From Vitrella brassicaformis CCMP3155 (taxonomy: Eukaryota > Protista > Chromerida): a stretch of 64,000 nucleotides of DNA. The notes below the pieces were generated by a model. That model ran no database searches. It saw only the letters and a program-made list of their open reading frames with translations, and was not told the DNA's origin. The stretch covers positions 1 through 64,000 of the forward strand of contig CDMY01000510.1 of NCBI GenBank assembly GCA_001179505.1. The letters are read 5' to 3'. Position 1 is the stretch's first letter. Each line of letters opens with the position of its first letter. Made by a program: the position numbers and the translations under genes. Shown here piece by piece: positions 10,330-17,816 of this stretch.

Positions 10330-10940
10330 GAGGTGTTTGCGTTTGTCGGCCAATCGTGTGCCGACCCACCTTTCTGTTTATTTCGGTGATCGACTGCCGA
10401 CTGACTTATCGCATGAGACCGTGTACAATAGGTGTGCGTCAAAACCATGGTTGCAAGCCGCCCGACCGACAACACACACCTCACAAATTCAAATGCGTGT
10501 GCTCTGCCTGACCCACCAACTCACACCCATCAGTGGGCACGCTGTAGCTTTGAGTAAGCATGTTGGAAGCGGCTGGACTACACCCATGACATGCAAAGGC
10601 TGGTACACACATTGATGCATCAGTCCGGCCGGCGGCTGGGTGACGCCCCTCTCTGCTGATCGAGGGCGTCACTGCTGGCCCTGGCTGCTGGGCACATAGC
10701 ATCACACAACACATGGCATGGGTGTGCATGGGATGGATGGCATGGATGTCTGTGTGTGAATCGCATGACGTCGAACGCCCCTGCCTGCCTGTCTGTCTGT
10801 CTGTCTGGGTGGCTGTCTCGATGACGTACTAAGTAAGTAAACACATTTCGACACACATACATGACTGTACACACACCTTCACTCGAATGCACTCACTGCA
10901 CCCATCGACTGCACACGTTCAGACGATCGGGTTGATTCAG

Positions 10941-13900
10941 TCACAGACAGACAGACCTGCCTTCAAGACGCCCATCCACCAGCTGACGCAGAGACCAGGC
11001 CCCTCCCAACGTCTCCTCCACCTTGGAGAGCCCAACTTCTACGCCACCATCACCGTCCTGTGTGACGAGACACTCCCTCACCGCAGTCAGGTAGCTCTGC
11101 AGGTCTGCCGACAGTGGACACGCCACACAAGTGTCCTGACGGAGCCAATCAACACACACACACACAGAGGGGACATCTTGCGTCTGCCGGTGTGGACACC
11201 GTGATGGTCACCTACGTCGAAGGCAAGGAAACACGCGTGCAGGAACTGTCGAGGGCACCGGGACGAGAGAAGCGCCTCCAGTGCCGCGTCGCTCTCCGCA
11301 TCGCCGTACATGGCGTCGCCCACCAATGGGAAGCCCAGAGTGCTCAGATGCACGCGGATCTGGTGCTGCCGGCCTGTGGCGATGGCCACAACCGCCAGGG
11401 TGAGGTTGCGGCCTGCAGCCGCGTATCGCTCGACTGGCCAGCAAAAGGTGAGTGCCGGCCTTCCAGCCGGGCTGACGATGGTTGTGCGGCCGGTGACCAT
11501 CAGCCGACGGCGACCTGATGTCAACACGACACACGCACAGCACAGGTGCAAAGGTGCGTTGAGCATGCTGGTCGGTCCAGTGCTCACACGCGAAAGGCCG
11601 GTCTGGCAAGCTCCCGTGGCACAGACAGAGGTAGAGCTTGGTCATGCGCCGACTCTCCAGCAGCAACTTCAGCCGGTGGTAGGCGGCATACCTCTTGGCC
11701 ACCAGCACCGGCCCAGACGTGTCCACGTCGAGACGATGCACGAACCCCAAAGACACCCTGCTGTCAGACTGCGGGCACGCTGCATCCGACCGCCCCTCGG
11801 CGGGCCTGGCCTTGTGGACGAGGTCGGCAATATCCTCGACTGTGTTGCTGGCGAGCATCTCATGCGGCGACAAGTCGTTGCGGGGTCGGTAGGGGACTGA
11901 GGGCGGTCGGTCAGCCGAGGAGGGAGGGGCGCACGACCATCTGGGAGGCTTGTACAGCACCTGAACGCCGCAATGGATGCATGACGTCGGCCCTTTCGTC
12001 TGTCTGCTTTCCTTACCATGACATCTTCCGTCTCGTGCAGCACGAGGGGCGCCTCTTTCCCAAGAGCAGCGGCCTCTCTCCCGTTGAGCTCTCCACTGTC
12101 AGTCTCGGACCTCTCGTCATCTCGCTCACCTTCGCTGCTGATGCCATCTTTCCGGAGCAACAGACCAGACAGGCTCTCAACCTTCGCGCGGATCATCCTG
12201 AACAGCCGCTCATCAATCACCCCCATGAGAGCAAAGCTGCTCGCGAGGGAGTAAAGAGCCAGCCAATCGTCGCCCCACTGATCACCGTCACAAGTGCCGT
12301 CACTTCGGCCCTCCAGCCGGCGAATGACCTCTGTCTTGACAGCATCGGCCAGCTGCCGGCTGGGCAGGGAGGCGTCAGTTGGAATGCCGAATGATGGTGT
12401 GGGGGCGTCTTGGTCGCTCATGTAGATGACGCCGTCGGCACCCTGTGCTGCAGCGGCAGATGTGAGGAGGTCCATTGCCGCATAGGCCAGGTTGGCGAGG
12501 TGCTGGGGCGTGAAGGCTGGCCACGGGAAGCCGAAGGGCGAGAGGGGGCTGTCATCGCTGCCGGTGGGTTCGGCATCGTCGTCACCACTCGGTGCTGAGG
12601 TCCCCCTCTCTATGACTTGTTGGAGCAGGTCTTCCGTCAGCTGCCCACTCTTCGCAAACCCCCACAGCAAGTTCGTCACATCCAGCGGTCCCAGCACCAG
12701 CGGCGAAGCACCGTCTGCTGCCATGGCTTCCTCCTGCAGGAACGCTTTTCTCAGGTCGTCGACGAAACTGTCTGGCAGCATCGGTGCCGCATCGATCGCC
12801 GCCATGGCCCACGAGATGACGGCGGCATCCATGGGGCCAAGCCTGCCGCGCCGATGGTCGATCTCGTGTGCGAGGGCAGCGAGGAATGACGGAAGAAGGG
12901 CGGGCGTTTCGTCGTTTGTCGATGATGTGCTGGTATTGGCCGGCTGGGGGTAGAGGAGGTCAGGGCGCATAGGGAGGAGGGTCGCCAGGCCCCACACTGA
13001 ACGAACACCCACCACATTGATTGCATCCATCTGCCACAATCGCCTTCCGTCCAGTCATCCACATACCTGTGTTGCATACGTGTTGCTCTGAGAAGGCCCC
13101 CAGCCTCTCTGGCGCAGCGCATTCTCTCATCGCAGCGGCGAGGAGGCCACGATGGGGGACGCCGACGGAGGCGAAGCTCCAGCACAGATTGCTGATGTCC
13201 TGACAGACACACGGGTGACGTGAGAATGTGGATGAGTTGCACATCGTCTTTCGGTGTCATTCATCCACCAATCAATCACCTGTGGTTTGGCCTGCTGAAT
13301 GCGCCGTGCGCTGACGCTTCCCAGGGCGTCGAACACGTCACGCCTTCGCACATTGCACTTGGCCAGGGACCAAGCAGCCAACGCGAGAGACTGCGAGTGG
13401 GATATGGCGTTTCGCATTTGGTACACGTACAGGTGGGTGTTCGTGTGCATTGTGGTAGGGCCGCCTTACGTGCCTGCATCGGGAATTTCTGTGCGTGGCT
13501 GACGATGAAAGAGCACATGCCGCTCAGCATCGCGGGCCAGCTGGGGCACTCACCCAGCCGTCCATGCATCTGCACCAGCCCACCCCCACACAGGCAGGTC
13601 ACACGAGGAGAGCATTTAGTATCCCTGGCTCATGTTGCTGCTGTTGCATATTGTTAACGCACTTTGAGTGTCACAAGTGCCCACAGCGCTTTGACAGCTC
13701 CCTGTGGGCTGAGACCTCCACTGTCTTCATTCAGCACCGCCACCAGACGACCCACCAGCAGCTCAGCCGCCTTGTCGCTGACAGCACATTTCTCCATCTT
13801 GGTGATCCCCCATAGCACGTTCGACAGGGCCCACCCACTCAGCCTCGACGCCTCCCCAGCCACACGCTCGCACAGCTCCCCAACACACGCGTGCTGACTG

Positions 13901-14738
13901 AGAACATCCGGCTGCAACCCCATTGCATCAAAGGCCATCCCATAGTCCTGCTCGGTCAGGCCGGCGCTGCTGCTGCTGCTTCTGGCACGTGAAGTGAGCT
14001 CGTGAATGAGGGCGTCGTAGACACATTTGTCACGGACACCTCCTTTTGCAAATCCCCAGAGCAGGTTGGATAGCTGTTGGTTAGACATGGATGGTAGACG
14101 AGATGAGGTGCAGATCTCTTCTGCAACGAGAGAATAGAGAGGCCGCCACTCAGAAGATGACGCGGGAGCCTCTAGGCGACCTGATCAAGGAAGCTTGATA
14201 GAGAATTAAGTACGGCTCTTGGGTGTCTACTCACCGAGTGCCCAGATGATATTTGCCAGGTTGACATCAGGGAGCGATTTGATTTGGGAGGGCAGCTCTT
14301 CCATCAGCCGGTGCGCCAGCCGCTCCACCGTCTTCCTGCCTCTCCGGAGGTCCGTTCTCAGCAGGTTGGCGAGGCTCTTCCCATCTGCACGTTTGGCCAC
14401 ACGATGAAGGGCCGTGATCAGATTCAGCGAGTCGAAGTCCTGAACAAGGCAAGGAGAGGCAAAAGGAAGACGTCTGGATGATCTGTGTGCATGATCGCAT
14501 CACTGACCTCCAGGTGGTCCTTCATGATTCTGGTGACGTGATGCAGCTTCCTGGCGTCCGCAAGCTTCCTGTTGAGCTGTCGCTGATCAGGCCCGCCGCT
14601 GTCTGGGTCCTCCACCGCTGAGATCTGCAAAACCTTCCTCTGCGCAAGCAACGAACGCCACGTGATCGGGGCGATAAATGCGGCGGCCGGAAAGATACAG
14701 ATGAGGCTTGTGAGAAGCCCAATGTGATAAGATCTCAT
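10941..14738 (-). CDS. Plastid-targeted FAST/HPR/OPR-like helical-repeat protein fused to an RluA-family pseudouridine synthase
   Basis: Leader MRSYHIGLLTSLICIFPAAAFIAP; repeats such as NLANIIWALG, QQLSNLLWGFAK, WALSNVLWGITK, QDISNLCWSFAS, LDVTNLLWGFAK; a phase-0 intron joins ETEDVM|VLYKPP; RluA motifs VHRLDVDTSG, KLYLCL, TGRQHQIRVH, PLVGDAMY, QFLHA. The 3' end is approximate. Confidence 0.85.
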
Positions 14739-14843
14739 CGCCGCGCGTCTCCGCGTCCCTGTGTTGAGAGAGCGGTTTCACGGAAACGCGAGCTAAGCTT
14801 CAAAACCGACGCGAGATCTGGGCTATCGGGCGCTTCAGCGAAG

Positions 14844-17816
14844 ATGGACAACCCTGCAGGTGGCACCGGTGAGAAGAAGCGCAAGGCTTCCGACGTGGAC
14901 ACCTTGCGTCGTGCTGCTGGTGGCATCGACAGTGCAGTCGACCGGTTTGCTTCAAGCACTCGACAGCGCATCATCGCAAAGGGCGGAACATGCACGGTGG
15001 GGACGGTGAGAGAAGACCTCCAGCTCAACGTTGGTACGAACCAGCAAAGTGAAGGTGCCCATGTGTGTGTGTGTGTTTGTTCATCAGTGGACCGTTGGCT
15101 TTGCCTGTTCTGTTTGTTTGCATGAATCAGGTGGCAGAGTGTTTCCCGTTCCCCGTCCGTCTCTGCTGAAGGATGGAGTGAAGGACACAATGCTTGCACA
15201 CCTGCTGCTGCACTACGAGGACGGCCTGGCCAAGGACGAGGACGGCAGACCCTTCCTCGACGCTGATCCCATTTGGTTTGAATGGTCGGCGACATAGTAC
15301 ACACGCTCAGACAACACCCCGCAGAAGCGCCGTCATCCCCATCGTTCCGATGCATCCCTCCCTCCCTCAGGTTGATGGATGAGATAGCGGGTCATGAAGG
15401 CGGCGAGATCGAGCTTCACAGCGGCCACGAGAGCGACGCATCTTACACCTTCTACCAACCCATTCTCCTCGCCAAAACAAAGCTGCAAATGGACATCGCA
15501 CCCCAGCAGCAGCAGCAGCAGCAGCGCGATGACGGCATGATGGACATAGATGGAGCACAGCCGGGGGCGGAAGAGGGGAGCGACGGGGGAGAGAGCGGCG
15601 CGGCCCTGAAGGCCATACAGCAGCATCTGTCCCGCGCTCAGGCCGCCGTCAGAGCGCTGGAGGAGACGGCAATGGAGACGGAGAAGTTCTACGAGGCGAT
15701 GGGGCCTTTCATGCGGTCTGACGATGGCGACGGTGGTGGGGAGGGCGACAAGGTGCTGTCGGTGACCATTCTGGGCAAAAGGGTGTCGACACTCGAGAAG
15801 ACGCTGACATACTTCGGCCCCCACAACGCCCTCTACAGGCGCTTTACGACGTGAGGAAGGGAAATGAGGGCGGGAAGAGAAGCCAGGCAGGGGCCAGCAG
15901 TTGGTGTGTGGTGCGTGCTGTGTGTTGTGCAGGTGGCCCGGGCCAATTTTCCCACACGAAATCGGATCACTTCATGAAGATAGGTACATACCGACACACT
16001 CGCCGTGTCAATAAATGCGTGTTGCGGCACCTGTCTGTCTGTTTTCCCCTTCCATGTGTCAGTCGATTTTGCGCGTCGTACCCGTTTCACCCCAGCCAAC
16101 GGCGTCGTCGACCCGCCAAAGGCGCACAACCAGGTAGCTAGGCGGCCTCAGCTGACTGACGCAGAAATGAATGTCCAGAAGGAGTGTTGTCACTCTTATG
16201 TGGCTGTGCTGTGTGCGCCGCCAGGCACAGCTTGCTCGCGATGGCGAGATGTATGGCCTGAAGATCGAGAAGGTGTACAAGCCCATATTGACTGACGAGG
16301 ACATGCAGGCGGTGATCGACATGACCAACAAAAGACAGCCGACCAAACGTCTGCTCTACAAGTGAGCCGACAGACACGATGGGCATCGACTTAGCAGGGC
16401 TGTGCTGACTCACGTTCATCAATATATCGTCTCTTCGTCGCAGGTCCAGCCGTGACACGTGGAGCTTCGGCAGCTTGCTGGACAGTGTGGGCGATGCCAG
16501 CGGCTTGCTTTTCGTCATGCAGTACAGCGCGACCAACAAGTCCGGCTTCTTTCTCGACGGGCAGCTCAACCTCCCGCCCAAGCCAACCGGAGAGTGAGTG
16601 ACGCAGACATTGACGGATGGATGAGTGGATGGATGCACGGATGGACTCATTGATGTAGGATGAAGACCTACTGCCCCATTTTCTTCTACTCGGCCAGTGG
16701 CCCATACCAAACTGCGACCAAGGTTCCGATCCCTGAGGACGCACAGGCGGTGCTGGTGGGTGGTCGGCTAGGGGCAGTGATGGACAACCTCAAGAGGCGC
16801 GTCGCCAATCTGTTCATCGGGGGCGACAGCACCGACTCAGCAGGCCTGTGGCTTGGCTTTCAGCTCCCCACCGACCCTCGACTCTCCGACGGCCCAGCTC
16901 CCGACCTGAGTCACTACTGCACCTGGGTCAAAGAAGGACATCTTCCGGAGGGTTACACGGGCAGTATCGACGAGGATGGCGACGGCACGCTTGCAGGGGC
17001 CGAGATACCGCCACCTCTCGAAGGACTGGAGGTCTGGCAGGTATGTCAAGGGCGGGTCTATCGCTGGGTGGGTGCGGTGCGGTGCATTGTGTCGGTGGAG
17101 TGCTGATCGAGTGTGCTGTGCGTCCTCAGGTGTCGGGCGAGTATGTGTTTGAGCCGATCCTCAGCGACGAGCAGATGCAGGCCGTCATTGCCATGACAAA
17201 CCAACCCAGCCACACCAGAGAGCTGCTCTACAAGTGAGCCGAGACAATGCCAGGACGGTTTATGTAGCAAGTTCATGTGGGCTCTCTCTCTCACACACAC
17301 AGGGCGACGAGAGATGGCTGGAGATACGGCAGGTTGATCGACTCTGTCGGCGACGCCAGCGGCCTACTGGTCGTCGTGCAGCACAACGACACACACCGAT
17401 TCGGGGCCTTCATCGACGGCCAACTCAAGCAGCCCAGCGACCCCACAAAGGAAGCGCAGTCCGAATGCCGCCTCTTCTTCTACTCGGTCAGCGGGGCCTG
17501 CGGCAATCCCACCCCCACCAAGGTCCCCATCCCTGAGGAGAACCGCTCTGCGGTGTCGGTGGCCGGTCGGGAGGGGGTGGCCCAGGGGAGGACGTATCTG
17601 TCCATTGACGCCTGGGACTCGGCGTACCTTGAGCTGGGGTCGAATGACCACGATGTGACGGGCCCTAGTGGCGATCTTCACCGCTGCAGAATGTGGATCA
17701 GCAAGGCCAGCTTGCCTGCGGGATACGTGGGACAGGTGGATGCTGACGGTGATGGGACGTTAGCAGGGGCGCAGATGTTCACTGCATCTGACATTGAGGT
17801 GTGGCGAGTGGGCTAG
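14844..17816 (+). CDS. BTB + BTB-like + two tandem TLDc domains (family member 2)
   Basis: LQLNVG|GRVFPVPR BTB; TLDc-1 at about 16240-17040 (GDGTLAGAEIPPPLEGLEVWQ) and TLDc-2 at about 17130-17816 (GDGTLAGAQMFTASDIEVW*). Confidence 0.85.

Follow-up and report, generated by a model that had tools for sequence, protein, structure and literature searches.

Two ways of directing site-specific pseudouridylation are known: guide RNAs, in the H/ACA small nucleolar ribonucleoproteins (snoRNPs), and stand-alone synthases with a readout of local RNA structure, by which the bacterial enzymes RluA, RluC and RluD find their uridine. PPR arrays, in turn, are known sequence readers. In human mitochondria, FASTKD2 is a partner of RPUSD4 and RPUSD3 in a module for pseudouridylation of 16S rRNA (PMC5737537; PMC12687428), and it has been proposed as the specificity determinant of that module (PMC5737537). 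Furthermore, Raa1 and the pseudouridine-synthase-like protein Raa2 share a complex in the chloroplast of Chlamydomonas (PMC7912774). In the present work, we analyzed the first 64,000 nucleotides of contig CDMY01000510.1 of the chromerid Vitrella brassicaformis CCMP3155 (hereafter the window, to which all positions refer). On its minus strand lies a gene (14738..10941) whose product combines, in a single chain, a signal-peptide-like start, an array of FAST/HPR-type helical repeats and a C-terminal RluA-family pseudouridine synthase domain with intact catalytic residues.

The nearest relatives of the repeat part are the FASTK, RAP and HPR proteins (FASTKD1-5, the apicomplexan HPR/RAP proteins and RESC6), which likewise contain hairpins of about 37 aa with a Trp/Ala motif, show the alpha-solenoid fold that is predicted for the Vitrella array, are nuclear-encoded and are aimed at organelles; FAST_1, which marks these proteins, is reached at threshold by the Vitrella array alone but not by the full-length protein. 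However, their C-terminal RAP domain (PD-(D/E)XK nuclease-like) is replaced by RluA in the Vitrella protein, and its start is signal peptide-like, whereas those proteins have been described mainly as mitochondrial. The catalytic part shares its fold and all catalytic motifs with bacterial RluC and RluD and with human RPUSD4, but the bacterial enzymes carry a small N-terminal S4 domain where the Vitrella protein has about 640 aa of helical repeats, and its catalytic domain contains an additional insertion of about 50 aa (aa 772-825). The human mitochondrial module (FASTKD2 with RPUSD3, RPUSD4, TRUB2, NGRN and WBSCR16) resembles it in bringing a FAST-type protein and RluA-family synthases to organellar rRNA; there they are separate polypeptides, whereas the single chain in Vitrella amounts to a "Rosetta stone" fusion. 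Similarly, Raa1, an OPR protein, and Raa2 represent a plastid partnership of a helical-repeat protein with a pseudouridine-synthase fold, although this partnership is noncovalent and Raa2 is a TruB-like splicing factor, while the Vitrella domain is of the RluA type and retains its catalytic residues. The PPR-DYW editing factors of plants are alike by analogy only: they too link a modular array to an RNA base-modifying domain and have undergone a large lineage-specific expansion of paralogs, but the Vitrella gene has HPR instead of PPR repeats, and its reaction would be an isomerization, not a deamination. True PPR-RluA fusions do exist in dinoflagellates, in the same catalytic clade. The fusion combines two known families, in parallel to PPR-DYW and HPR-RAP.

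No paper describing a fusion of HPR, FAST, RAP or PPR repeats with a pseudouridine synthase was found in the full-text literature, most subscription journals being outside its coverage, so that a description elsewhere is possible. Pseudouridine is mentioned neither in the founding paper on HPR proteins (PMC6212722) nor in the RAP survey, and the Vitrella protein does not appear in the supplements of Fussy et al. (PMC6668581). The fusion is therefore visible in public databases under generic names, yet apparently undescribed.

Structure and expression of the gene

The gene is situated in intron-rich eukaryotic DNA of about 60% G+C and consists of ten exons. Its features are as follows.

10941..14738, minus strand: coding sequence (CDS), exons 1-5 at 14738-14508, 14439-14235, 14180-13663, 13569-13474 and 13390-13280, and exons 6-10 at 13199-13067, 12996-12017, 11960-11588, 11514-11216 and 11135-10941
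14676..14738, minus strand: signal-peptide-like N-terminus, aa 1-21 (sequence and hydrophobicity comparison)
12149..14424, minus strand: FAST/HPR-type helical-repeat array, aa 83-714, with six introns inside (homology, repeat-unit model, AlphaFold2, Foldseek)
13391..13473, minus strand: GC..AG intron of 83 nt, with the sole non-GT donor of the gene (joint 13390/13474 in runs X5 and X6)
11961..12016, minus strand: phase-0 GT..AG intron of 56 nt separating the array exon from the first RluA exon (joint 11958/12015 in runs X1, X5 and X6)
11067..12058, minus strand: RluA-family pseudouridine synthase domain, aa 745-1005, four exons (Pfam, NCBIfam, PDB, Foldseek)
11961-12016, 11515-11587 and 11136-11215, minus strand: introns inside the RluA span (spliced contigs)
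11727..11729, minus strand: GAC codon of the catalytic Asp836 in the HRLD motif (sequence; invariant alignment column)

To obtain transcript evidence, reads of four public sequencing runs were compared with the window. Two of them, X5 and X6, yielded one spliced contig each, 3326 and 3329 nt long, respectively; both follow the minus strand colinearly over 14763-10821 and lack nine short segments (54-93 nt) that correspond to introns. Three of the same joints, including 11958/12015, were present in run X1. After boundary placement, in which the ambiguity of the joints was allowed for, eight introns proved to be GT..AG and one GC..AG. The joined exons form an open reading frame that starts with the ATG at 14738, ends with the stop codon at 10943-10941 and encodes 1046 aa, and the transcript spans at least 14763 to 10821. 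The ATG at 14738 is the first one in the transcript and an in-frame stop lies just upstream of it; the N-terminus of the protein is therefore fixed by this stop together with the 5' end of the transcript. An earlier note on this DNA, made by a model from the letters alone, had outlined 10941-14738 as one gene in which a phase-0 intron rebuilds ...EDVM to VLYKPP.... Its limits turned out to be precisely those of the CDS, and the intron (11961-12016) was recovered exactly when the junction was checked in the transcript contigs. The possibility of two neighboring genes was ruled out, since single spliced contigs crossed both parts in two runs.

When exon 3 (172 aa) was used as the query of an exhaustive phmmer search, a protein of 1047 aa (P0001) was retrieved with an E-value of 1.6e-111. 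It corresponds to CEM18906.1 (A0A0G4FW72) of Vitrella brassicaformis CCMP3155, is the same as our 1046-aa model through aa 1041 and is annotated only as "RsuA/RluA-like domain-containing protein". The two differ at the 3' end of the CDS (10941-10960), where the public model ends with ...EGSSQGQQ, implying an extra splice, while the contigs of all four runs show no splice at 10821-11134 and give the C-terminus ...EGRSVCL followed by a stop. The latter end was preferred because the contigs cross this site unspliced, and the last 5-6 residues of the public model are probably wrong.

Catalytic domain, repeat array and N-terminus

The catalytic domain was identified by several independent profiles. 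Pfam PF00849 (PseudoU_synth_2) matched aa 757-940 over positions 2-151 of its 152 (E-value 5e-16, 59.7 bits, cut-off 26.8), and the TIGR00005, RluC and RluD models of NCBIfam matched both exon pieces, which assigns the domain to the RluC/RluD-type subfamily. RluC and RluD were also its best solved relatives by sequence in the PDB, though the two types could not be told apart, as their scores were nearly equal. No S4 domain was found upstream of it in profile scans of the protein. The HRLD motif (H833-R834-L835-D836), Tyr868 and the GRQHQIR motif with R931/H933-R936 are all in place. The claim of the earlier note that the gene contains a complete RluA domain with HRLD and the catalytic Asp is thus borne out by the near-full PF00849 match and by these residues. 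The column of Asp836 was invariant in 37 domains of the fusion family, and in a broader set of 124 related domains the Asp, Tyr and Q-I-R residues were invariant in 124 of 124, the other positions of the catalytic motifs being invariant or nearly so. This conservation argues for selection on catalysis.

The full-length AlphaFold2 (AF2) model, built with 37 sequences, had a mean predicted local distance difference test score (pLDDT) of 73 and a predicted template-modeling score (pTM) of 0.71. Most of the RluA domain was modeled with a pLDDT of about 85-94, except for the low-confidence insertion of about 50 aa (aa 772-825). Foldseek matched this part to the catalytic domain of RluC (1xpi/1v9k, target TM-score 0.84) and also to RluD, RluA, RPUSD1 and RPUSD4. 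Taken together, the conserved residues and the modeled fold indicate that the RluA domain is probably an active enzyme.

Upstream of it, aa 83-714 consist in the AF2 model of helices and loops only, with a pLDDT above 90 over aa 300-440. About 27 helices are predicted, arranged in about 11-13 hairpins with the motif L-x-N-h-h-W-(A/G/S)-h-(A/S)-K (h, hydrophobic). The earlier note had described about nine repeats with a motif of this L-x-N-h-h-W type; the motif stands, while the count was a slight underestimate, given the 11-13 or so motif-bearing helices of the model. It had also named the lack of a solenoid fold as a result that would speak against it, and the predicted helical-hairpin array goes the other way. 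A hidden Markov model (HMM) of a 37-aa unit was derived from canonical repeats in relatives from dinoflagellates; the core of its consensus, L-S-N-L-A-W-A-F-A, is as in the Vitrella protein. The unit HMM found eight sites in the Vitrella protein, four of them above 3 bits, versus 0.02 per shuffled sequence, and in the best part of the array the motifs are spaced by 37-45 aa. For comparison, a Polarella protein (P0042) has 12 units, mostly 35-40 aa apart, the repeats of Vitrella being more degenerate.

Homology searches gave a concordant picture. The phmmer search with exon 3 returned 583 matches at E ≤ 0.001, and the top ones, when scanned, were proteins with FAST_1 and a C-terminal RAP domain. 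A profile of 41 arrays of the fusion family was compared with solved protein chains and matched RESC6, a trypanosome RAP protein (1.6e-38), FASTKD4 (5.9e-8), several mitoribosomal RAP proteins of Toxoplasma gondii and mitoribosomal repeat proteins of green algae; several of the matched chains belong to mitoribosomes or to the RNA-editing substrate-binding complex of trypanosomes. The Vitrella array alone matched RESC6 at 1e-4. In agreement, Foldseek paired the array part of the model with RESC proteins, PPR10 and mitoribosomal repeat proteins of T. gondii, Polytomella and Chlamydomonas. The FAST/HPR-type kinship that the earlier note had ascribed to the array is hence backed by profile scans, homology and structure prediction. 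In profile scans of the protein, neither RAP nor FAST_2 was matched, the C-terminus being occupied by the RluA domain instead. The gene thus shares only the repeat array with the FASTK/RAP proteins and falls outside their strict definition (FAST_1, FAST_2 and RAP). In addition, the piece of exon 3 at 13663-14178 (minus strand) weakly matched the bacterial XopAD/skwp repeat effectors in NCBIfam (E-value 1.8e-7, far below the cut-off) as well as PRK09169 repeat proteins, which hints at a distant kinship between the HPR/FAST repeats and these bacterial repeats.

The N-terminus begins with a short charged stretch, which is followed by a 15-residue hydrophobic core and AAA (aa 1-21), and Phe22 stands right after the predicted cleavage site (AAA|FIAP). 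A candidate signal peptide with this AAAFIAP motif, as proposed earlier, can thus be recognized at the expected place, and both the AxA site and the hydrophobicity of the h-region (2.58) fit a signal peptide by simple rules. The latter value, the best 12-residue Kyte-Doolittle mean, was the highest among 20 family members compared, and a signal-peptide-like core was found in this member only. In both chromerids, plastid proteins retain a Phe immediately behind the cleavage site of the signal peptide, with weaker conservation in Vitrella (PMC6668581), and Phe22 at position +1 matches this presequence motif. The features of the N-terminus point to entry through the endoplasmic reticulum (ER). 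We know of no RNA substrate that an enzyme on the ER route would meet ahead of the plastid stroma, and plastid import is therefore the best inference for this protein.

Related fusions and the surroundings of the gene

The HPR-RluA architecture is not a one-off. Among the best 150 of the 583 array matches there were four other RluA-bearing proteins, three from Polarella glacialis and one from a Logan assembly, all with both FAST_1 and PF00849. A word search with a Polarella catalytic domain as a query then yielded 120 proteins, 543-1727 aa in length, in which the RluA domain is preceded by either FAST_1/RESC6-type or PPR arrays. With few exceptions, they come from dinoflagellates (Polarella, Symbiodinium, Effrenium, Durusdinium, Cladocopium, Alexandrium and Yihiella). 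When 139 RluA-domain proteins were labeled by BLAST, 63 were assigned HPR-type arrays (including P0001 and P0156) and 65 PPR-type arrays. The search for the same architecture in other proteomes, which the earlier note had suggested, thus found it widely in dinoflagellates, where it is common (about 60 clusters of HPR-RluA proteins, besides about 60 of PPR-RluA proteins), and as a paralog in Vitrella itself. This paralog (P0156, 831 aa) combines an RluA domain with an N-terminus that lacks a signal-peptide-like core. The strict 37-aa unit HMM detected no repeats in P0156, whereas a local phmmer search with its N-terminus matched 35 proteins of the local set, mostly HPR/RAP; with lower certainty, this N-terminus is regarded as a degenerate HPR array. 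An HPR fusion was neither detected nor listed in Perkinsus, among eukaryotic relatives of P0156, in Chromera or in apicomplexans, in a limited word-index search that leaves its absence unproven.

Within the family, the median pairwise identity was 22% for the arrays versus 46% for the catalytic domains. The faster divergence of the arrays is as expected if they carry target specificity. In a FastTree phylogeny based on 124 domains, a single clade (support 98) united the HPR and PPR fusions of dinoflagellates, with HPR fusions basal and most PPR fusions nested among them, which suggests that arrays have been exchanged on one catalytic lineage. When more outgroups were added (IQ-TREE), the two Vitrella HPR fusions grouped with all dinoflagellate repeat fusions (SH-aLRT 92), and so did P0304, a protein with no detectable array, while RluA proteins bearing LRR, WW or S4 domains and other eukaryotic RluA proteins fell outside this clade. 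With moderate support, and with a sampling that was influenced by the length filters of the searches, the tree fits one fusion event that preceded the split of chromerids and dinoflagellates.

The PPR-RluA fusions of dinoflagellates amount to about 65 clusters among the proteins P0170-P0284. PPR_2 is also present in 13% of the RluA proteins of one ESM Atlas cluster, for which Chlorophyta are the most frequent source. Fusions of RluA with LRR (RNI-like) or WW domains occur in alveolates and other protists (P0157 from Noctiluca, P0292, P0169, P0318, P0332 and P0164); in P0164 (1188 aa), a protein of Vitrella, the RluA domain is located mid-protein.

A divergent neighbor gene lies on the plus strand, starting at or before 14812-14816, as judged from contigs of 4167 and 1868 nt, and contains a GT..AG intron at about 15033-15129. 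The 5' ends of the two divergent transcripts are only about 50 nt apart (14763-14816), which suggests a very compact bidirectional promoter between these positions. (TG)n/(CA)n microsatellites at 11146-11170, in an intron of the fusion gene, and at 15060-15081 gave chimeric joints and numerous loose ends throughout the four runs. The joint 11166->15060 was rejected as a splice and attributed to an assembly chimera on account of its GA..CC ends, extra letters and position in the microsatellites. Finally, the 3' UTR contains a simple repeat of (CAGA)n type (10772-10820), and the contigs run 43 nt past 10821.

Proposed function and its alternatives

Starting from the established gene structure, expression, domain identities, intact catalytic residues and membership in the fusion family, we infer that the protein is an RluC/RluD-like synthase imported into the plastid, whose array selects an organellar RNA that is then modified through Asp836; we regard this proposal as somewhat better than evenly probable. 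The predicted signal peptide followed by Phe would take the protein by the ER route into the complex plastid, where the 11-13 or so FAST/HPR hairpins of the alpha-solenoid would bind a particular organellar RNA. The array would stand in for the S4 RNA-binding domain that bacterial RluC and RluD carry ahead of their catalytic domain, and the tethered RluA domain would use Asp836 to isomerize one uridine, or a few, in its vicinity to pseudouridine. The target would most likely be plastid rRNA during ribosome assembly and, less likely, tRNA or mRNA. The idea of the earlier note that it might be a fragmented plastid rRNA found no support for Vitrella; fragmented rRNAs have been placed in the mitochondria of myzozoan lineages (PMC6212722). 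The functional proposal is strengthened by the large HPR-RluA/PPR-RluA family with invariant catalytic residues, with which it fits. In particular, a role of the array as the target specifier would fit its fast divergence, the very large size of a family with invariant catalytic residues and the substitution of PPR for HPR repeats. The partnerships in trans of FASTKD2 with RPUSD3 and RPUSD4 (PMC5737537; PMC12687428) and of Raa1 with Raa2 (PMC7912774) are further precedents in its favor.

Several observations weigh against this proposal. The repeats of the array are degenerate, and the Pfam FAST_1 score of the full-length protein (25.1 bits) is below the threshold of 27.4, reaching 28.5 bits on aa 80-740 alone. 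To our knowledge, there is no recognition code for HPR repeats. While aa 80-440 are basic (pI 8.9), aa 440-745 are acidic (pI 4.25, net charge -26) with disordered, low-confidence acidic loops, so that only part of the array looks like an RNA reader. The segment following the predicted cleavage site (aa 22-80) is short and weakly basic (net +1), with acidic residues present. Furthermore, HPR proteins have been described mainly as mitochondrial (PMC6212722), and most of the relatives among the 20 proteins compared have Arg/Ser/Ala-rich, mitochondrial-looking or unclear N-termini.

One alternative is that the same enzyme acts in the mitochondrion, or in both organelles, on the pieces of fragmented mitochondrial rRNA that are the presumed ligands of HPR proteins. 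The HPR family has expanded where mitochondrial rRNAs are fragmented, with 70 members in Vitrella (PMC6212722), the closest matches of the array in both structure and sequence are mitoribosomal RAP/HPR proteins, and Arg/Ser/Ala-rich N-termini are found in many dinoflagellate relatives. However, the hydrophobic core with AxA|F corresponds to the chromerid plastid route (PMC6668581), unlike an amphipathic mitochondrial presequence, and the N-terminus in question is fixed by the upstream in-frame stop and the 5' end of the transcript, which makes a mitochondrial enzyme rather improbable. A different assumption is that the array serves as a scaffold or ribosome-assembly anchor that docks on a pre-ribosome or on partner proteins, while the RluA domain finds its uridine by local RNA structure. 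This would agree with the acidic half of the array, with the RluA-like proteins in assembly intermediates of the trypanosomatid mitoribosome (Foldseek matches) and with the structural role of HPR/RAP proteins in the T. gondii mitoribosome, as indicated by the PDB matches and by PMC11652630. Yet a single docking site can hardly explain about 120 clusters in which the arrays diverge fast and the catalytic domains slowly, and arrays of PPR repeats, sequence readers as they are, can take the place of HPR arrays within one catalytic clade; we therefore consider a scaffold unlikely, if the less improbable of these two alternatives.

The RluA domain might also have been kept for RNA binding or chaperoning without catalysis, as has been proposed for Raa2 in psaA trans-splicing. 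The precedent is close in that Raa2, a pseudouridine-synthase-like splicing factor of Chlamydomonas, works with an OPR protein (PMC7912774), but the catalytic residues are all intact in the Vitrella protein and do not vary among 124 paralogous and orthologous domains, which is unexpected of a family of pseudo-enzymes, and a noncatalytic role seems very unlikely. As to an artifact of the gene model, in which an adjacent repeat-protein gene and an RluA gene were merged by annotation, nothing speaks for it except the general risk of intron-rich genomes. With contigs X5 and X6 crossing both parts, the junction intron shared by X1, a frame unbroken over ten exons and the same architecture recurring in many species, its probability is negligible.

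Accepting a plastid-directed synthase guided by its array as the preferred reading for Vitrella, a broader and more tentative proposal can be made, which we find plausible but would put at clearly less than an even chance. HPR-RluA and PPR-RluA proteins together may constitute a protein-only, repeat-programmed system of organellar pseudouridylation in myzozoans, in which each array would read a short RNA sequence and place one pseudouridine, much as PPR-DYW factors do in C-to-U editing. The Vitrella gene would then be the plastid-directed member of an ancestral family that expanded strongly in dinoflagellates.

If this is true, helical-repeat arrays (HPR and, in dinoflagellates, PPR) covalently joined to an active-looking RluA domain would represent a third mode of targeting, in which the array replaces the guide RNA. 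It would also lend direct support to the old idea that FASTK-type proteins bring RNA-modifying enzymes to organellar sites (PMC5737537). The fusions make it testable what is recognized by the numerous alveolate HPR proteins, whether the organellar RNAs of dinoflagellates and chromerids contain many programmed pseudouridines, and whether such arrays can be redirected to write pseudouridine at other sites without a guide RNA. For Vitrella itself, the gene is a candidate factor of plastid ribosome biogenesis.

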